NCBI RefSeq assembly: GCF_006345805.1
Contig: NW_021824732.1
Coordinates: 1 to 17,914 of the forward strand
DNA: 17,914 nt
Direction: 5' to 3'
Origin: Octopus sinensis
Taxonomy: Eukaryota
Part shown: piece after piece, positions 6,863-17,376 of the stretch
Layout of the letters: every line of letters begins with the position of its first letter
Position numbering within the stretch: the first letter of the stretch is position 1
Made by a program: the position numbers and the translations under genes
The notes under the pieces: generated by a model
The model's input: the letters and a program-made list of their open reading frames with translations, nothing else
Database searches by the model: none
What the model was told of the DNA's origin: nothing

Positions 6863-6909
<47 letters not shown>

Positions 6910-6968
6910 TGGTGGTGGTGGTGGTGGTGGTGATGGCGGTGGCGGTGGTGGTGCTGGTGGCGTTGATG

Positions 6969-7032
<64 letters not shown>

Positions 7033-7038
7033 TAGTAG
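6800..7038. repeat. (ACT/ACA)-rich tract followed by (AGT)n-(GGT)n-(AGT)n
   Basis: Directly visible. Confidence 0.95.
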
Positions 7039-7954: not shown

Positions 7955-8187
7955 ACCCATTTCTCTCCTTCTCTCTCACTACCAGTCCTCCCTTTCACTC
8001 TATCAAATTCCTTCACATTCCTCTCATTCTCCGAATAATGGCGGTGTATCTCGGGTGGAAAAGGTGAGTGGGCTGGAATAACTGTGATGCGAATAGTCTT
8101 AATCACGATTTGTGAGAAATAAATTCTTCCATTTCTGATTCTTTGTGCTTTATTTTATGCCATGGACGTTTTACCATTGTTGTTGTT

Positions 8188-8294
8188 GTTGTTGCTGTTG
8201 TTGTTGTTGCTACTAGTGTCGTTGTTGCTGTTGTTGTTGTTGCTACTAGTGTCGTTGTTGCTGTTGTTGTTGTTGCTACTAGTGTCGTTGTTGC
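8188..8294. repeat. 33-bp minisatellite, three exact copies plus a partial copy, in a (GTT)n field
   Basis: gttgttgctgttgttgttgttgctactagtgtc at 8188, 8221 and 8254. Confidence 0.95.
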
Positions 8295-8439
8295 TATCGT
8301 TGTTGCTGTCATTGTTGGTTTTTCTTATGGCGTTTGTTGTCTTTGTTGCATGTTGGTGTGGTTGCTGTCGTTATTGTTGGTGTTGTTGTCGGGGGGAGGT
8401 CATGGGGGGAGTGATAAAGGTAATGGTTGTGGTAAAGGT

Positions 8440-8765
8440 GAGCGATAGTGGTAGTGGAGGTGGAGGTGATGGTGGTGATGGTGGTGGTGGTGGTGGTGGT
8501 AGTGGTGGTGGTGCTGCTGCTGCTGCTGGCCCTGGTTGTGATGGTGGTTTTTGTACATGACGTCCCCGATGAGTGCAAAGCCGAAGACGACGACAACAAC
8601 GACGATGATGATAATGATAATAGTGGTGGTGGAGGTGGTGGAGGTGGTGGAGGTGGTGGGGTTAGTGGTGGGGGGTGATGATGATGAGGATGATGATGAT
8701 GATAGTGGTGGTTTGGTGGTGGTAATGACGATGGAGGTCGTGATGATAATGGTGGTGGTGGTGAC

Positions 8766-8804
<39 letters not shown>

Positions 8805-8876
8805 AGTGGTGGTGTGGTGGTAGTAGTAATGACGATGAAGGTGGTGATGATAATGGTGGTGGTGGTGGTTGTGGTG

Positions 8877-8927
<51 letters not shown>

Positions 8928-8950
8928 GTAATGATGACGGTGATGATGAT
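8440..8950. repeat. (GGT)n/(GAT)n low-complexity field with a ~105-bp higher-order repeat
   Basis: gtaatgacgatg(g/a)aggt(c/g)gtgatgataatggtggtggtg followed by (GAT)n occurs near 8722 and 8826. Confidence 0.9.
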
Positions 8951-9072
8951 CTATCTCATACCTATCTTTCTTCCCCTATCTCTTTCGCTTTCTTCTCAAC
9001 TCTGTAAAAAAAAAAAAAAGATGTGAATAATTTGAAAGAAACATTGATAATTACTAATTTATCAACCCTGCT

Positions 9073-9600
9073 ATCATCACCACCACCACAACCACTACCA
9101 ACCCTAACACCGCCACTATCGCAAGAAGTGCAAGCAACGACTACAACCACAACTGCAACAACGCCAAGAACATCATCGTCGTAACCACCACCAATAACAT
9201 CACGTCTACTATCACCACCAGCATCACAACCTCTACCACCATGCCACCACTATCACCACCACCACCACTAACACCACTACCTTCACCAGTACCATCACTC
9301 CTACCACTGCCACCGTAACCCTACCCACCTAGTAACCACTCAGACCACCAACATTACCATCTCGACCGCATCCCCACCATCATCCGGTTATCCTCTTACA
9401 GTCACTAGCGACATTATGACCACTACTACCACTAACACTACAATCACTTACCAACACTGTCACCGCTATTACCACGTTAATTACTATCATCACTACCTTT
9501 ACTACTACCACTACTACTACTACTACTAACACCGCAACAACGACCACTGCTACCCTTGGGTACCTCACTACTACTACTACCCCAACAATCACCGTCACTA
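9073..9600. repeat. Degenerate (ACC)n/(ACT)n low-complexity field
   Basis: Directly visible. It is the complementary motif class to 8440-8950. Confidence 0.88.
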
Positions 9601-11754: not shown

Positions 11755-12030
11755 TTTTCAAACCATGAAGGGGAAGCTGTTGACTTCTCCTGTTCGAAGG
11801 TTATAATGGACACAGGTTTGTGTGTCACATAGCTAGCTAGAGGCGATGGGCTCTTGGAGCTAATCAACGGTAGCATTCGTCCTATTTTCCTGGACGGCCA
11901 TATTAGCTTGGCGATAAGTATTAATATCCAGTACCGGTGACGTAGTCTCCTTTAGAGAGATTTAGAAATGTTAATATTTCTATTCATATATATATATATG
12001 GAGGGCTGTAGAGGAAATGAAATTGAAAAT

Positions 12031-13010
12031 GCGTGCTAACAATTCTGCCACCTCACCGCTTTTTTTATGATTAAAGTAATAATGATAATCCTTTGTCCTA
12101 TAGACAGAAGGTCTGAAATTTTGCAGGGAGGACGGAGTCTAGTTGATTACGTTGACCCCAGTGACTGAGTGGTACTTATTTTATCGACTCCAAAAGAACG
12201 AAGGGCAAAGTCGACGTCGGAGGCATTTGAACACAGCTTAAAGACAGATGAAATGCTGTCAAGCATTAGTCCGGCGTGCTGACGATTCTGGCAGCTCGCC
12301 GCCTGGTTTCGAATTTTGGCACAGAACCAGAACTTTTTGAGGCAAGGGGTAAGTCGATTACACCGACACCAGGACTTGACTAGCATTTATTTTATCGACA
12401 CCTCAAGGGATGAAAGGCAAAGTCAACCTCCGCGGAATTTGAACTCAGAACGTAAAGAACCGCTAAGCATTTTGTCCGACATGGTAACGATACTGCCAGC
12501 TCGCCGCCTTTTTATGATTAAATTAATGTTAATAATGATTTCAAACTTTGGCACAAGGTCAGCATTTTCGGAAGAAAGAGTATGTCGATTACATCGACCC
12601 CAGTATTCATCTGGTACTTATTTTATCGACCCCGAAAGGATGAAAGACAATGTCAACATCAGCGAAATTTGAACTCAGAACGTGACGACGGGCGAAATGC
12701 CATTAAAGCATTTTACCCGGTGTGCTAAAAACTCAGCCATCTCCCCGTCTTTTTATGATTAAAGTAAAAATAATCCTTTCTACTATTGTCACAAGGCCTG
12801 AAATTTATGAGGAGGGGACTAGTCGATTACATCGACCCCAGTGTTTCACTGGTTCTTAATTTATGGACCCCGAAAGTATGAAAGACAAAGTCGACTTCGG
12901 CGGGATTTGATCTCATAATATAATGACGGACGAAATGCCGGTAAACATTTTGCCCGGCGTGCTAACCACTCAGCCATCTCACCGCCTTTTCATGATTAAA
13001 GTAAAAGTAA
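12031..13010 (-). mobile_element. Head-to-tail cluster of diverged SINE family 2 copies (tRNA head plus Nin-like domain): one head remnant and four near-full copies
   Basis: Heads (plus strand ...gccagctcgccgcct or variants) end at 12060, 12304, 12509, 12750 and 12987. Each body has a variant of ggtacttattttatcgaccccgaaaggatgaaaggcaaagtcgacctcggcggaatttgaactc, the reverse complement of a B box followed by a Nin-like domain. Confidence 0.85.
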
Positions 13011-13538
13011 TAATAATGGTTATTACTTTCGATAACTATGAGTGATAACTTTGAATATGTTTCTACCCATATTTTATCCTCATCACCGAGACATAGACTT
13101 CACCGTACTTCGCCGAAATAGTGGTGAAAGATTAGCTAAATAAATGTAGAATATTGTACATTGGTGGGAATAGGAACACAGAATTGTTCAGAGAATAAAA
13201 ATTCGGAGATGCCATCATCATGAAAAACCAATAAAGTTTTGTTAACACGTTTAATGCAACGAGCATTAAAAAGCTAACTGGAAATACATATACTGCTTGC
13301 ATTAAATATGTTAACGCTGGCTGAGCACATATAATAGTTAGGAGGAAGTTAATAGATATTTGACGTCGAGAAAGGAATGGAGAATAGCAGGCGAGAAGGG
13401 AGAAGAAGACGAAGAGATTTACTCGGGGAAAAAAAGGGGGAGAAATAGCTTAAAAGAAACCGTGGGAGGTGGAGGTGAGAGACGAGAGAAGTAGGAGGTA
13501 GATTAAAACATGGAAACGGTAAAGCAATGAGACTGGCT

Positions 13539-13622
13539 ATTGTTGTTGTTGTTGTTGTTGTGGCTGTTGTTGTTGTTGCTGTTACTGTTGTTGTTGTTGC
13601 TGTTGCGGCTGTTGTTGTTGTT
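13539..13622. repeat. (GTT)n microsatellite with GCT variants
   Basis: Directly visible. Confidence 0.95.
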
Positions 13623-13644
13623 AATGATAATAAAAATATTATTA

Positions 13645-14157
13645 AAGCAGTGAGCGAGAAGAATTGTTAGCACAACGGGAAAAAAATGCTTAATTTCATT
13701 TCTTCAGCCATTACGTTTTAAGATCAAAAACCGACGACTTCGGCTTTGCTTTATATCCCTTAAGGTGTCGATAAAATAAATACCAGTTGAGTACTGAGGT
13801 CGATGTACTCGACCAGCCTCCCCCTACAATTGCCGGGCTTGTGTCAAAATTTGGAACTTTCGTTGAAAATGATGAAGGCGGCGAGCTGGCAGAACCATTA
13901 ACACGCCGGACAAATTGCTTAGCGGCATTACGGCCTTCTCTATGTTCTGCGTTCAAATTCTGCTGAGGTCAACATTGCCTTTCATCCTTCCGGAGACGAT
14001 AACTACTCCGGAAGGATGTTATCGACGTTTTCAGTTGAAATCCCACCGGAGCCAACTTTACATTTCGTTCTTTGGAGGTCGATAAAATAAAATACCAGTA
14101 AAAAAAACTTGAGCCAATGTTCTTGATTAACCCACTCTCCCAAATTTCAGGCATTGA
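13645..14157 (+). mobile_element. Three tandem diverged SINE family 2 copies on the plus strand
   Basis: Copy 1 ~13645-13860 (decayed head, gtcgataaaataaataccag, gaggtcgatgtactcgac). Copy 2 from ~13873 (aggcggcgagctggcagaacc...gcgttcaaattc...cctttcatcctt), broken by a fold-back. Copy 3 ~14025-14157, 5'-truncated. Confidence 0.8.
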
Positions 14158-14635
14158 TCTTATGTGAGAAGCAATTATTCATATCGCTTAAGATAATCTT
14201 GCGAATTAATCATGTTTCACATTTTGCGAGGTTAATTAAGCATTTTATTGTCGGGGCAAAATTCCTTGTGGCCCTTAAGCGTAATGTACGAAATAGACTC
14301 GCCTAGAGTGTGTTATCTACTTTTTTATTCGGTTCAAATTCGTGCCTAGACAGTCTCGCCTAGATAATCTTGCCAATTATCTAATTTGGTTCAAATTTCT
14401 GCCTCACTGTTTCCATTATTGTATGTTAACTGCAGTCATTTTGTAATTATAGAAAATATTATTAAATAATTGCTTATAGATGTTATCTTCCACTTCATAA
14501 ACGTTATTTGTTTTATCAGAGAACATAATAAAATTTTTCGTTTTTCTTTTTAATTGTGATTATTCTTTTTGTCATCGATAAGTTTGTTTTTGTAGGTATT
14601 AGTACAGTTACAGAAACATATATAAGAAACATATA

Positions 14636-16884
14636 TATTTCTTTACAACCCACAACATGCTAAACATAGAGGGGACAAACAAGGACAAACAAAGGGATTA
14701 AGTCGATTACATTAACCCCAGTGCGAAACTGGTACTTTATTTATCGACACCGAAAGGATGAAAGGCAAAGTCGACCTCGGCGGAATTTGAACTCAGAACG
14801 TAACGGCAGACGAAATACCTATTTCTTTACTACCCTCAATGGGCTAACACAGAGGGGACAAACAAGGACAGAACAAACGGATTAAGTCGATTGTATCGAC
14901 CCAGTGCGTAGCTGTACTTATTTAATCGACCCCGAAAGGATGAAAGGCAAAGTCGACCTCGGCGGAATTTGAACTCAGAACGTAACGGCAGACGAAATAC
15001 CTATTTCTTTTACTTACCCTCAATGGGCTAAACACAGAGGGGACAAACAAGGACAGACAAACGGATTAAGTCGATTGTATCGACCCCAGTGCGTAGCTGG
15101 TACTTATTTAATCGACCCCGAAAGGATGAAAGGCAAAGTCGACCTCGGCGGAATTGAACTCAGAACGTAACGGCAGACGAAATACCTATTTCTTTACTAC
15201 CCTCAATGGGCTAAACACAGAGGGGACAACAAGGAGACAAACGGATTAAGTCGATTGTATCGACCCCAGTGCGTAGCTGGTACTTATTTAATCGACCCCG
15301 AAAGGATGAAAGGCAAAGTCGACCTCGGCGGAATTTGAACTCAGAACGTAACGGCAGACGAAATACTATTTCTTTACTACCCTCAATGGGCTAAACACAG
15401 AGGGGACAAACAAGGACCACAAACGGATTAAGTCGATTGTATCGACCCCAGTGCGTAGCTGGTACTTATTTAATCGACCCCGAAAGGATGAAAGGCAAAG
15501 TCGACCTCGGCGGAATTTGAACTCAGAACGTAACGGCAGACGAAATACCTATTTCTTTACTACCCTCAATGGGCTAAACACAGAGGGGACAAACAAGGAC
15601 AGACAAACGGATTAAGTCGATTGTATCGACCCCAGTGCGTAGCTGGTACTTATTTAATCGACCCCGAAAGGATGAAAGGCAAAGTCGACCTCGGCGGAAT
15701 TTGAACTCAGAACGTAACGGCAGACGAAATACCTATTTCTTTACTACCCTCAATGGGCTAAACACAGAGGGGACAAACAAGGACAGACAAACGGATTAAG
15801 TCGATTGTATCGACCCCAGTGCGTAGCTGGTACTTATTTAATCGACCCCGAAAGGATGAAAGGCAAAGTCGACCTCGGCGGAATTTGAACTCAGAACGTA
15901 ACGGCAGACGAAATACCTATTTCTTTACTACCCTCAATGGGCTAAACACAGAGGGGACAAACAAGGACAGACAAACGGATTAAGTCGATTGTATCGACCC
16001 AGTGCGTAGCTGGTACTTATTTAATCGACCCCGAAAGGATGAAAGGCAAAGTCGACCTCGGCGGAATTTGAACTCAGACGTAACGGCAGACGAAATACCT
16101 ATTTCTTTACTACCCTCATGGGCTAAACACAGAGGGGACAAACAAGGACAGACAAACGGATTAAGTCGATTGTATCGACCCCAGTGCGTAGCTGGTACTT
16201 ATTTAATCGACCCCTAAAGGATGAAAGGCAAAGTCGACCTCGGCGGAATTTGAACTCAGAACGTAACGGCAGACGAAATACCTATTTCTTTACTACCCTC
16301 AATGGGCTAAACACAGAGGGGACAAACAAGGACAGACAAACGGATTAAGTCGATTGTATCGACCCCAGTGCGTAGCTGGTACTTATTTAATCGACCCCGA
16401 AAGGATGAAAGGCAAAGTCGACCTCGGCGGAATTTGAACTCAGAACGTAACGGCAGACGAAATACCTATTTCTTTACTACCCTCAATGGGCTAAACAGAG
16501 GGGACAAACAAGGACAGACAAACGGATTAGTCGATTGTATCGACCCCAGTGCGTAGCTGGTACTTATTTAATCGACCCCGAAAGGATGAAGGCAAAGTCG
16601 ACCTCGGCGGAATTTGAACTCAGAACGTAACGGCAGACGAAATACCTATTTCTTTACTACCCTCAATGGGCTAAACACAGAGGGGACAAACAAGGACAGA
16701 CAAACGGATTAAGTCGATTGTATCGACCCCAGTGCGTAGCTGGTACTTATTTAATCGACCCCGAAAGGATGAAAGGCAAAGTCGACCTCGGCGGAATTTA
16801 AACTCAGAACGTAACGGCAGACGAAATACCGCAAAGCATTTCGCCTTGCGTGCTAACGATTCTGCCAGCTCGCCGCCTCAAACG
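14636..16884 (-). mobile_element. SINE family 2 concatemer: one full-length SINE plus eleven 5'-truncated 184-bp units in a single 17-bp TSD
   Basis: Twelve units; the marker cgaaatacc occurs at 14811, 14993, 15178, 15359, 15541, 15725, 15909, 16091, 16274, 16458, 16638 and 16822. The tRNA head is at 16831-16884 only. tatataagaaacatata occurs at both 14619-14635 and 16885-16901. Confidence 0.93.
16796..16867 (-). promoter_or_regulatory. Internal Pol III promoter of the lead SINE copy: A box (16867-16857) and B box (16805-16796, mutated)
   Basis: Minus strand TGGCAGAATCG (A-box-like) and GAGTTTAAAT. The other eleven units have canonical GAGTTCAA at the B box. Confidence 0.6.
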
Positions 16885-17376
16885 TATATAAGAAACATAT
16901 AAAGTCCGATTCGAGGGGAGTCCGCTAAAGATTAACGCTTTGGACGTGAAAAGTGGCTGCATCCGCTCAAAATATTATTACCATCAACTGCAGAAAATGA
17001 TTTTACCTAAGGGTTTTGAAAAAAAAGCCTCTCCGTTTGCAGAGAGAAGCAGAGATACTCTCGGTGACACATTTAATAAAAGCAATTTCTTAATTATTTG
17101 GGGTTTTTTTCACATATTTCATTGAATGTCTCTTTCCAAAGCGAAAATCAAATGCTTCTACTGGTGAATAGGAAAACCGTATCTACAGGAATAACTGAAA
17201 AAGTATTACAGAAGCAAAAAATATCAATTGTCTTACTGGTGCATAATTAACATCATTATGGGAATGACTATGGAATTTAATTACGCAGTCAAATAATCAA
17301 GGCACTAGAAATTTTACAGTTCAACCGCACTCAATACTAAATTTTTGTTCGCGTAATTAGATTTGCAGTAGAAATA

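Follow-up and report, generated by a model that had tools for sequence, protein, structure and literature searches.

A tandem array of partial SINE copies inside one target-site duplication in Octopus sinensis

A 17,914-nucleotide (nt) stretch of Octopus sinensis DNA (contig NW_021824732.1 of assembly GCF_006345805.1; this whole stretch is called the window below) carries, on its minus strand between positions 16901 and 14619, a short interspersed element (SINE) of which all but the first 54 nt is present twelve times in tandem. A single perfect 17-bp target-site duplication (TSD) brackets the entire array, whose structure is real and far beyond chance. The explanation we favour, at a probability of roughly 0.55, is that the array grew inside one SINE insertion, which would have begun as a dimer made by a template jump during reverse transcription and would then have been expanded by unequal exchange. 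The locus had been described in an earlier note made from the sequence alone, and several claims of that note are taken up below where the relevant results are given.

Structure of the array and of its SINE

Read along the minus strand from 16901 to 14619, the locus consists of the 17-mer TATATGTTTCTTATATA, a 54-nt head, twelve units, the same 17-mer again and then an unrelated AT-rich flank. Tandem Repeats Finder (TRF) reported a single array at 14636–16830 with a period of 184, 12.0 copies and 97% matches, and the individual units, which start at 16830, 16646, 16466, 16282, 16099, 15917, 15733, 15549, 15366, 15186, 15001 and 14819, are 180–185 bp long. The TRF result and the mapped unit starts bear out the twelve-unit SINE array of period 184 that the earlier note had reported. 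Every unit runs from GGTATTTCG to GTAAAGAAATA: all 12 begin with GGTATTTCG (one of them reads AGTATTTCG because of a 1-nt deletion) and all 12 end in AAAGAAATA, in full agreement with the claim that the copies restart at one internal nucleotide and continue to the SINE 3' end. The 20-mer that spans a junction, GTAAAGAAATAGGTATTTCG, is exact at 9 of the 11 junctions and carries a 1-nt indel at the other two, against a chance expectation of 0. Alignment of the units and blastn place the repeat unit at nt 55–239 of the full SINE, with unit 1 extending 5' into the 54-nt head and the last unit stopping at the SINE 3' end. Units 1–11 occupy 14820–16830, each with a B-box-like motif and one SalI site (GTCGAC); the predicted count of one such site per unit proved correct for the whole array (n = 12). 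The GC content of the unit is 46%.

The 17-mer occurs only twice in the window, at 16885–16901 (5' copy) and 14619–14635 (3' copy), and the two copies, identical at 17/17 positions, each adjoin an end of the element. Even with two mismatches allowed, the chance expectation for such a pair is 0.02. Since this single exact TSD lies at the outermost ends, one insertion scar encloses the whole array, just as the earlier note had maintained. Without the element, the minus-strand flanks give a predicted empty-site sequence of ...GGACTT-TATATGTTTCTTATATA-TGTTTCTG... The insertion target was already a short direct repeat, with AGAAACATATATA present twice in tandem at 14612–14637, across the flank, the 3' TSD and the final two SINE bases. 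The end of the SINE (..ATA) also overlaps in sequence with the start of the TSD (TATA..), so the priming site may have offered 2–3 nt of complementarity.

The head is present once (16831–16884) and is made up of a 7-nt leader, CGTTTGA, followed by 47 nt (GGCGGCGAGCTGGCAGAATCGTTAGCACGCAAGGCGAAATGCTTTGC). By eye, it contains an A-box-like motif (TGGCAGAATCG), an acceptor-like GGCGGCG and the 5' arm of a hairpin, and a B-box-like motif (GAGTTCAAATTCC) lies in the unit; in the predicted fold GGCGG pairs with CCGCC in the manner of an acceptor stem. Those motifs and that stem are what stands of the description of the SINE as tRNA-headed. ARAGORN found 0 tRNAs in the sequence, the Rfam tRNA model gave no match at E<=10 even when the head was searched alone, and an Rfam search of 16760–16900 returned only chance matches (Hrs12 and c-di-GMP-I, E 1.5–4). 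Accordingly, the head is called tRNA-like and of RNA polymerase III (Pol III) type here, which is as far as the evidence goes.

As is typical of SINEs, the element has a flanking TSD and dispersed relatives. No LINE (long interspersed element) is present in the window. At least seven further copies or fragments lie at 12030–14098 on both strands, with 71–90% identity, and in blastn the head aligned once within the array and additionally with the heads of at least five older copies at 12030–14000. Both the minimum free energy (MFE) fold and the centroid fold of the full SINE contain an 11-bp hairpin at 16820–16845 (arms GGCGAAAUGCU / GGUAUUUCGUC, loop UUGC), and the nucleotide at which the copies restart, G16830, is the first base 3' of its loop. 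A corresponding stem is predicted in 6 family copies, with a compensatory change at 2 of the 11 pairs, which supports the hairpin weakly. The position of G16830 would fit, although only weakly, an RNA 5' end made by cleavage in an anticodon-like loop.

The first junction, the chimeric last unit and the favoured origin

The repeated segment extends exactly from the equivalent of G16830 to the last base of the SINE, and the periodicity stops at both edges: the head reads ...CTTTGC|GG where a unit end reads ...GAAATA|GG, and the TSD reads TATATG where a unit start reads GGTATT. The junction itself is GTAAAGAAATA|GGTATTTCG with nothing in between. Because it contains no copy of the target site, a double insertion at one target is ruled out for this array. 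There is likewise no microhomology at the two breakpoints, which rules out a microhomology-mediated duplication. By our estimate a random DNA breakpoint would fall on the boundary between SINE and TSD about 1 time in 240. What is thus a coincidence for a duplication of DNA follows automatically if a reverse transcriptase begins copying at the physical 3' end of an RNA, and the level of RNA, or of target-primed reverse transcription (TPRT), is therefore favoured. We infer, as the earlier note did, that at least the first junction is best placed there.

Two sets of published observations bear on this junction. In Drosophila, most tandem junctions of non-long-terminal-repeat (non-LTR) retrotransposons have an intact 3' end on one side and a 5'-truncated neighbour on the other, and dimers of transposable elements (TEs) grow into arrays (PMC5932611). 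Those tail-to-internal tandems (McGurk & Barbash 2018, PMC5932611) share with the octopus locus the type of junction and the notion of a dimer as the seed for unequal exchange. However, the double insertion favoured for them leaves a copy of the target in the junction, whereas here there is none and one TSD surrounds both partners. With no target copy in the junction and a single TSD, a template jump in one event fits better than a double insertion. Such jumps are well documented for the reverse transcriptases of long interspersed elements (LINEs), which make chimeric retrocopies inside one set of TSDs (PMC2104539). In chimeric retrotranscripts of the U6/L1 type and in the tripartite pseudogene of Magnaporthe (PMC2104539; for a route through RNA ligation see PMC6789731), the exact 3' end of a full-length small RNA is fused to a 5'-truncated retrocopy within one TSD set, as it would be here. 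The difference is that both partners in the present case belong to one SINE family, so that their fusion creates a direct repeat able to expand (compare PMC2104539).

Over about 2 kb, units 1–11 depart from their consensus by only 3 substitutions and 17 indel events. Fourteen of these 17 indels lie in homopolymers and the other 3 in TG-type repeats, and indel-type differences amount to ~0.8%. Units 1–11 are effectively one sequence, and their differences fit the consensus error of unpolished long reads rather than evolution, as had been suspected from their appearance. Unit 1 departs from the consensus at a single site, C31T. The earlier statement that units 2–12 differ mostly by single-base indels is correct for units 2–11 but not for unit 12 (14819–14636). 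Positions 1–70 of this unit (14750–14819) are identical to the array consensus, while positions 71–184 (14636–14749) carry 15 substitutions and two 1-nt indels, among them the variants T71, A78, T92, TA106-107 and GT110-111. Counted as differing alignment columns, the contrast is 0/70 versus 18/114 (Fisher p=1.5e-4). The last 114 nt are thus ~16% different from the array; they represent what remains of another, or an older, SINE copy that has diverged, and they still end in GTAAAGAAATA.

Sequence constraint does not account for the 0/70: the six older copies in the window diverge at 11–21 of the 70 sites in positions 1–70, or 16–30%, and at 9–14 of the 51 sites in positions 71–121. As these copies are equally diverged on both sides, the boundary at position 70 is a recombination junction and not the edge of a constrained region. 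Hyper-editing of RNA is ruled out as a cause of the divergence by the kinds of change found: A>G accounts for just 2 of the 9 transitions, and the remaining 6 changes are transversions. Unit 12 is therefore a recombinant, with an array-type 5' side and a 3' side from a distinct or older SINE copy. No donor of this tail was found among the neighbouring SINE copies in the window, whose 3' tail differs (...ATTATT..CTTTAATCATAAAAA).

The direction of change was assessed over positions 71–121 with the six other SINE copies of the window as outgroups. At the ten differences in this interval, the array is derived at 4 (78, 92, 110 and 111) and unit 12 at 6 (71, 81, 82, 94, 106 and 107, including a CG>TA pair at 106-107), corresponding to derived fractions of ~8% for the array and ~12% for the unit-12 tail. 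The head is derived at 4/47 sites, similar to the 4/51 of the array body, which supports a common origin of the head and the array-type body (body A) in one RNA. Had the two kinds of body diverged in place, ~3.3 differences would be expected between the TSD copies, and by our calculation the probability of seeing none is ~0.04. Given the perfect TSD, the divergence between array and unit-12 tail probably predates the insertion, and the original bodies were probably copied from two separate source RNAs whose sequences were no longer the same.

On these grounds we propose the following history. A single TPRT event would have started on a SINE RNA (giving body B) and stopped copying at the equivalent of G16830, which may have been the 5' end of a broken or processed RNA or else a pause site. 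From there the reverse transcriptase would have switched to another SINE RNA, full-length and transcribed from a source gene with slight differences, which it would have entered at the physical 3' end and copied up to and including the 7-nt leader. The product would be a tail-to-internal heterodimer, head plus body A plus body B, in one 17-bp TSD. What can be reconstructed of this dimer has the marks of a template jump, namely one TSD, a full-length 5' partner and an exact 3' end joined to a 5'-truncated partner; the relic of the 3' partner is ~16% different from the 5' partner, a difference that later conversion could also give. In a second step, unequal exchange between sister chromatids or homologues, or slippage during replication or repair, would have acted between the 184-bp bodies and raised body A to eleven copies not long ago. 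Of body B, the distal 114 nt alone would remain, the rest having been lost when the last unit exchanged with an interior one near position 70. A chimeric last unit is what unequal exchange should yield, since a crossover between an interior and a terminal unit swaps the proximal part of the terminal unit and never its distal part.

Several points weigh against this history. The order of the eleven later junctions, and whether they arose in RNA or DNA, rest on parsimony at a single locus. Units 1–11 contain no shared substitutions that would trace a stepwise duplication, a homogeneity that an origin in a single event would explain no less well. To go from 2 to 12 units, several exchanges must have taken place while no more than 3 substitutions accrued in 2 kb, and the first of these exchanges would have involved bodies ~16% different in their 3' part. 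Moreover, the location of the breakpoint in a hairpin loop is weak evidence, since much of any RNA is loop. The array behaves as a young minisatellite or satellite seed with no demonstrated function.

Other explanations for the array

The main competitor, which we consider possible but unlikely, is that the whole concatemer was laid down in one event at the RNA level, either from a multimeric Pol III transcript of a master array or from a 184-nt circle copied in rolling-circle fashion during one TPRT. The one exact TSD agrees with this, as do the 11 junctions, all alike and all on the exact SINE 3' end, and the lack of substitution structure in units 1–11. Read-through by Pol III is conceivable, as runs of at least four T are absent from the SINE strand of the array and the first TTTT lies at 14533, ~100 nt past the 3' TSD. 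The ends of the unit (5' UAUUUC and 3' GAAAUA) can pair, which would join them, and RtcB-type ligation before retrotransposition is documented for U6/L1 (PMC6789731). Unit 12 is an obstacle. A homogeneous rolling circle or multimer predicts twelve identical units and therefore does not by itself explain a first-copied (3'-most) unit that is chimeric and ~16% off in its 3' part; either an additional homologous template switch or a master array with an odd edge is needed. A circular template requires yet another switch for the 5' head. In addition, a Pol III SINE transcript of 2.25 kb would be unusually long. The fold of the 184-nt unit (MFE -44.3 kcal/mol) also lends no help, being no better than that of shuffled sequences (z=-0.37), and no ribozyme was detected.

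The last of these points was addressed with several searches. Rfam gave 0 matches in the whole window at the gathering threshold, only a meaningless snoR03 match in the AT-rich flank at E<=10 across 14400–17100, and 0 matches over a 2.3-unit stretch (15550–15980) with the laxest filters at E<=10. A regular-expression search for the hammerhead core CUGANGA found none on either strand of a unit dimer. A retrozyme or other ribozyme-bearing element is thereby ruled out, and the absence of a recognisable ribozyme remarked on in the earlier note is borne out. The defining feature of metazoan non-LTR retrozymes is a type I hammerhead in each unit (PMC7229834; bioRxiv 10.64898/2026.07.22.740005). Retrozymes are also expressed as small circular RNAs with extensive self-pairing. 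They resemble the array in having tandem units of 150–450 bp, a GC content of <50%, TSDs of >4 bp and copy numbers anywhere between the dimer and large multimers (Cervera & de la Pena 2020, PMC7229834), but the array differs from them in that it has no hammerhead, its unit is not unusually self-paired and that unit is a recognisable SINE body, with a Pol III-type head at one end. The earlier note had offered two alternatives, a retrozyme-like rolling circle and the single insertion of a dimer with later expansion in DNA. With no ribozyme, an unremarkable fold and a chimeric unit 12, the former gains nothing from the present results, and the latter, which they favour, is retained in the history proposed above.

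A retrozyme-like cycle of circular or multimeric SINE RNA could in principle dispense with a ribozyme and be run by host tRNA enzymes in place of the hammerhead. Cleavage of the tRNA-like head would fall exactly on the restart nucleotide, in the anticodon-like loop, much as happens in the processing of tRNA halves or tRNA introns, and the resulting 184-nt 3' fragment, with its pairable ends (UAUUUC/GAAAUA), would be closed or concatenated by an RtcB-type tRNA ligase. A LINE reverse transcriptase would then copy the circle in rolling-circle fashion into one target site. A homologous template switch on entering the circle would account for the unit-12 chimera, and another on leaving it for the head. 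We regard this scheme as improbable.

It is also improbable that the array was imported, that is, that an older solo SINE, the owner of the TSD and of the unit-12 tail, recombined with a homogeneous array elsewhere by ectopic gene conversion, synthesis-dependent strand annealing or an extrachromosomal circle. A chimeric last unit with a sharp boundary would follow naturally, the private changes of the unit-12 tail, including CG>TA at 106-107, are those of an old copy, and SINE-derived satellites are found at many loci per genome in squamates (PMC10702118). On the other hand, no donor array is known, and a perfect TSD sits poorly with a supposed old copy that is ~12% derived, the chance that both 17-mers would have stayed intact being low by our estimate. 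A single crossover with a circle, moreover, predicts an old-type unit 1 in positions 1–70, where only C31T is seen, and integration of an array-derived DNA circle by one crossover is accordingly disfavoured.

A purely DNA-level history in place is, in our judgement, very unlikely. According to it, a solo SINE underwent an end-joining duplication of nt 55–239 and persisted as a long-lived dimer, and concerted evolution later homogenised everything except the distal edge. Edge units do escape homogenisation in general satellite theory (cited in PMC10702118), and the derived states are split about evenly between array (4) and edge (6). Yet this history needs a breakpoint exactly on the SINE/TSD boundary without microhomology, leaves the perfect 17/17 TSD at P ~0.04 and does not explain why unit 1, at the 5' edge, has a single difference where ~16% would be expected. 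Finally, it is very improbable that assembly from noisy long reads produced a false copy number or a spurious part of the array: differences that are ~0.8% indel-type, mostly homopolymeric and almost free of substitutions do point to an unpolished consensus, but a 2.2-kb array lies well inside single long reads, there is coherence across both flanks, the TSD and the distinct last unit, and an error of this kind would alter the number of units and not the architecture.

Counterparts in other genomes and repeats in the rest of the window

The closest described counterpart of the array is the SINE-derived satellite (sSat) of squamates. The locus is a clean example, though not the first, of a mobile element turning into a small satellite. 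A longer terminal unit that reaches the SINE terminus has been documented for these satellites (PMC10702118). Like the sSats described by Vassetzky et al. (2023, PMC10702118), the octopus array consists of a tandemly repeated SINE portion with a longer terminal unit extending to the SINE terminus, falls into the class of 150–180 bp units and is highly homogeneous within the locus. It differs from them in its SINE family, in the repeat reaching the exact 3' end and in the enclosure of the whole locus by one TSD, a feature not discussed in PMC10702118. Both structural hallmarks of an sSat, a unit that is a portion of a SINE and a longer terminal unit, are thus present, here at a locus known singly. 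What the locus adds to the type is the clean TSD bracket and the relic edge unit, and these two features support the birth of such arrays from a template-jump dimer followed by unequal exchange. How the first tandem duplication arises in the transition from TE to satellite is still argued over, and here every landmark is preserved: a perfect TSD, an intact head, a relic edge unit and a junction placed precisely at the 3' end of the SINE. Taken alone, the locus serves well for teaching but does not amount to a new principle. Should the junction turn out to be dispersed, every copy with a TSD of its own, retrotransposition of SINE multimers as such would be shown.

Full-length SINE multimers, such as those of Dip/B1 in the jerboa (as cited in PMC10702118), are likewise head-to-tail runs, of up to ~8 units. 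They are composed of whole elements, whereas the units of the focal array lack the head, and for this reason they match an older cluster at 12030–13075 better. This cluster, on the minus strand, is a head-to-tail run of related SINEs in which four full units are accompanied by a tail fragment and a 31-nt head stub. The full units measure 237, 241, 205 and 243 bp and are only 68–78% identical in pairwise comparison, and each ends in a conserved ...ATTATT..CTTTAATCATAAAAA that directly adjoins the next head. TRF detected only 1.8 copies there, at a period of 238, and both ends of the run are out of phase with the SINE. It could represent successive insertions into an A-rich tail or an old tandem duplication. 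Two to three more SINE copies lie in the opposite orientation, on the plus strand, at 13652–14098. One of them (13876–14098) is rearranged, with a perfect 13-bp inverted repeat, CATCCTTCCGGAG/CTCCGGAAGGATG, at 13983–14018 and a second partial core (GTCGATAAAATAAA at 14078, matching 13767).

The sequence collections that were searched (metagenome contigs, GTDB genomes and IMG/VR) do not include the host genome. Among the metagenome contigs, the junction 20-mer had one match, at 852–871 of Ga0209083_1000343, in an apparent bacterial coding region unrelated to the SINE, which shows that a 20-mer is not specific at the size of a metagenome database. A 19-mer from the tail and a 23-mer from the core gave 0 matches in the GTDB genomes and IMG/VR. 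For a 54-amino-acid open reading frame (ORF) spanning the junction, the protein collection searched held neither a record nor a word-sharing protein, and six SINE strings had no match in the literature text searched.

The window as a whole is repeat-rich intergenic eukaryotic DNA, with no convincing protein-coding gene among its ORFs. A large block of trinucleotide repeats and minisatellites with opposite strand bias lies at 8143–9553. Its first part is (TTG/GTG/TGA)n with a 33-bp unit (8184–8305, 96%) and a 104-bp unit (8676–8934), and this is followed at 9184–9553 by (CAC/ACC/ACT)n. The GC skew of the block is +0.54 and then -0.43, suggestive of an inverted arrangement of one repeat type. 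Microsatellite density is very high throughout the window, including 6863–7038, with (TAG)59, (CATA)34, (TGTA)24 and many (TA)n and (TG)n tracts.

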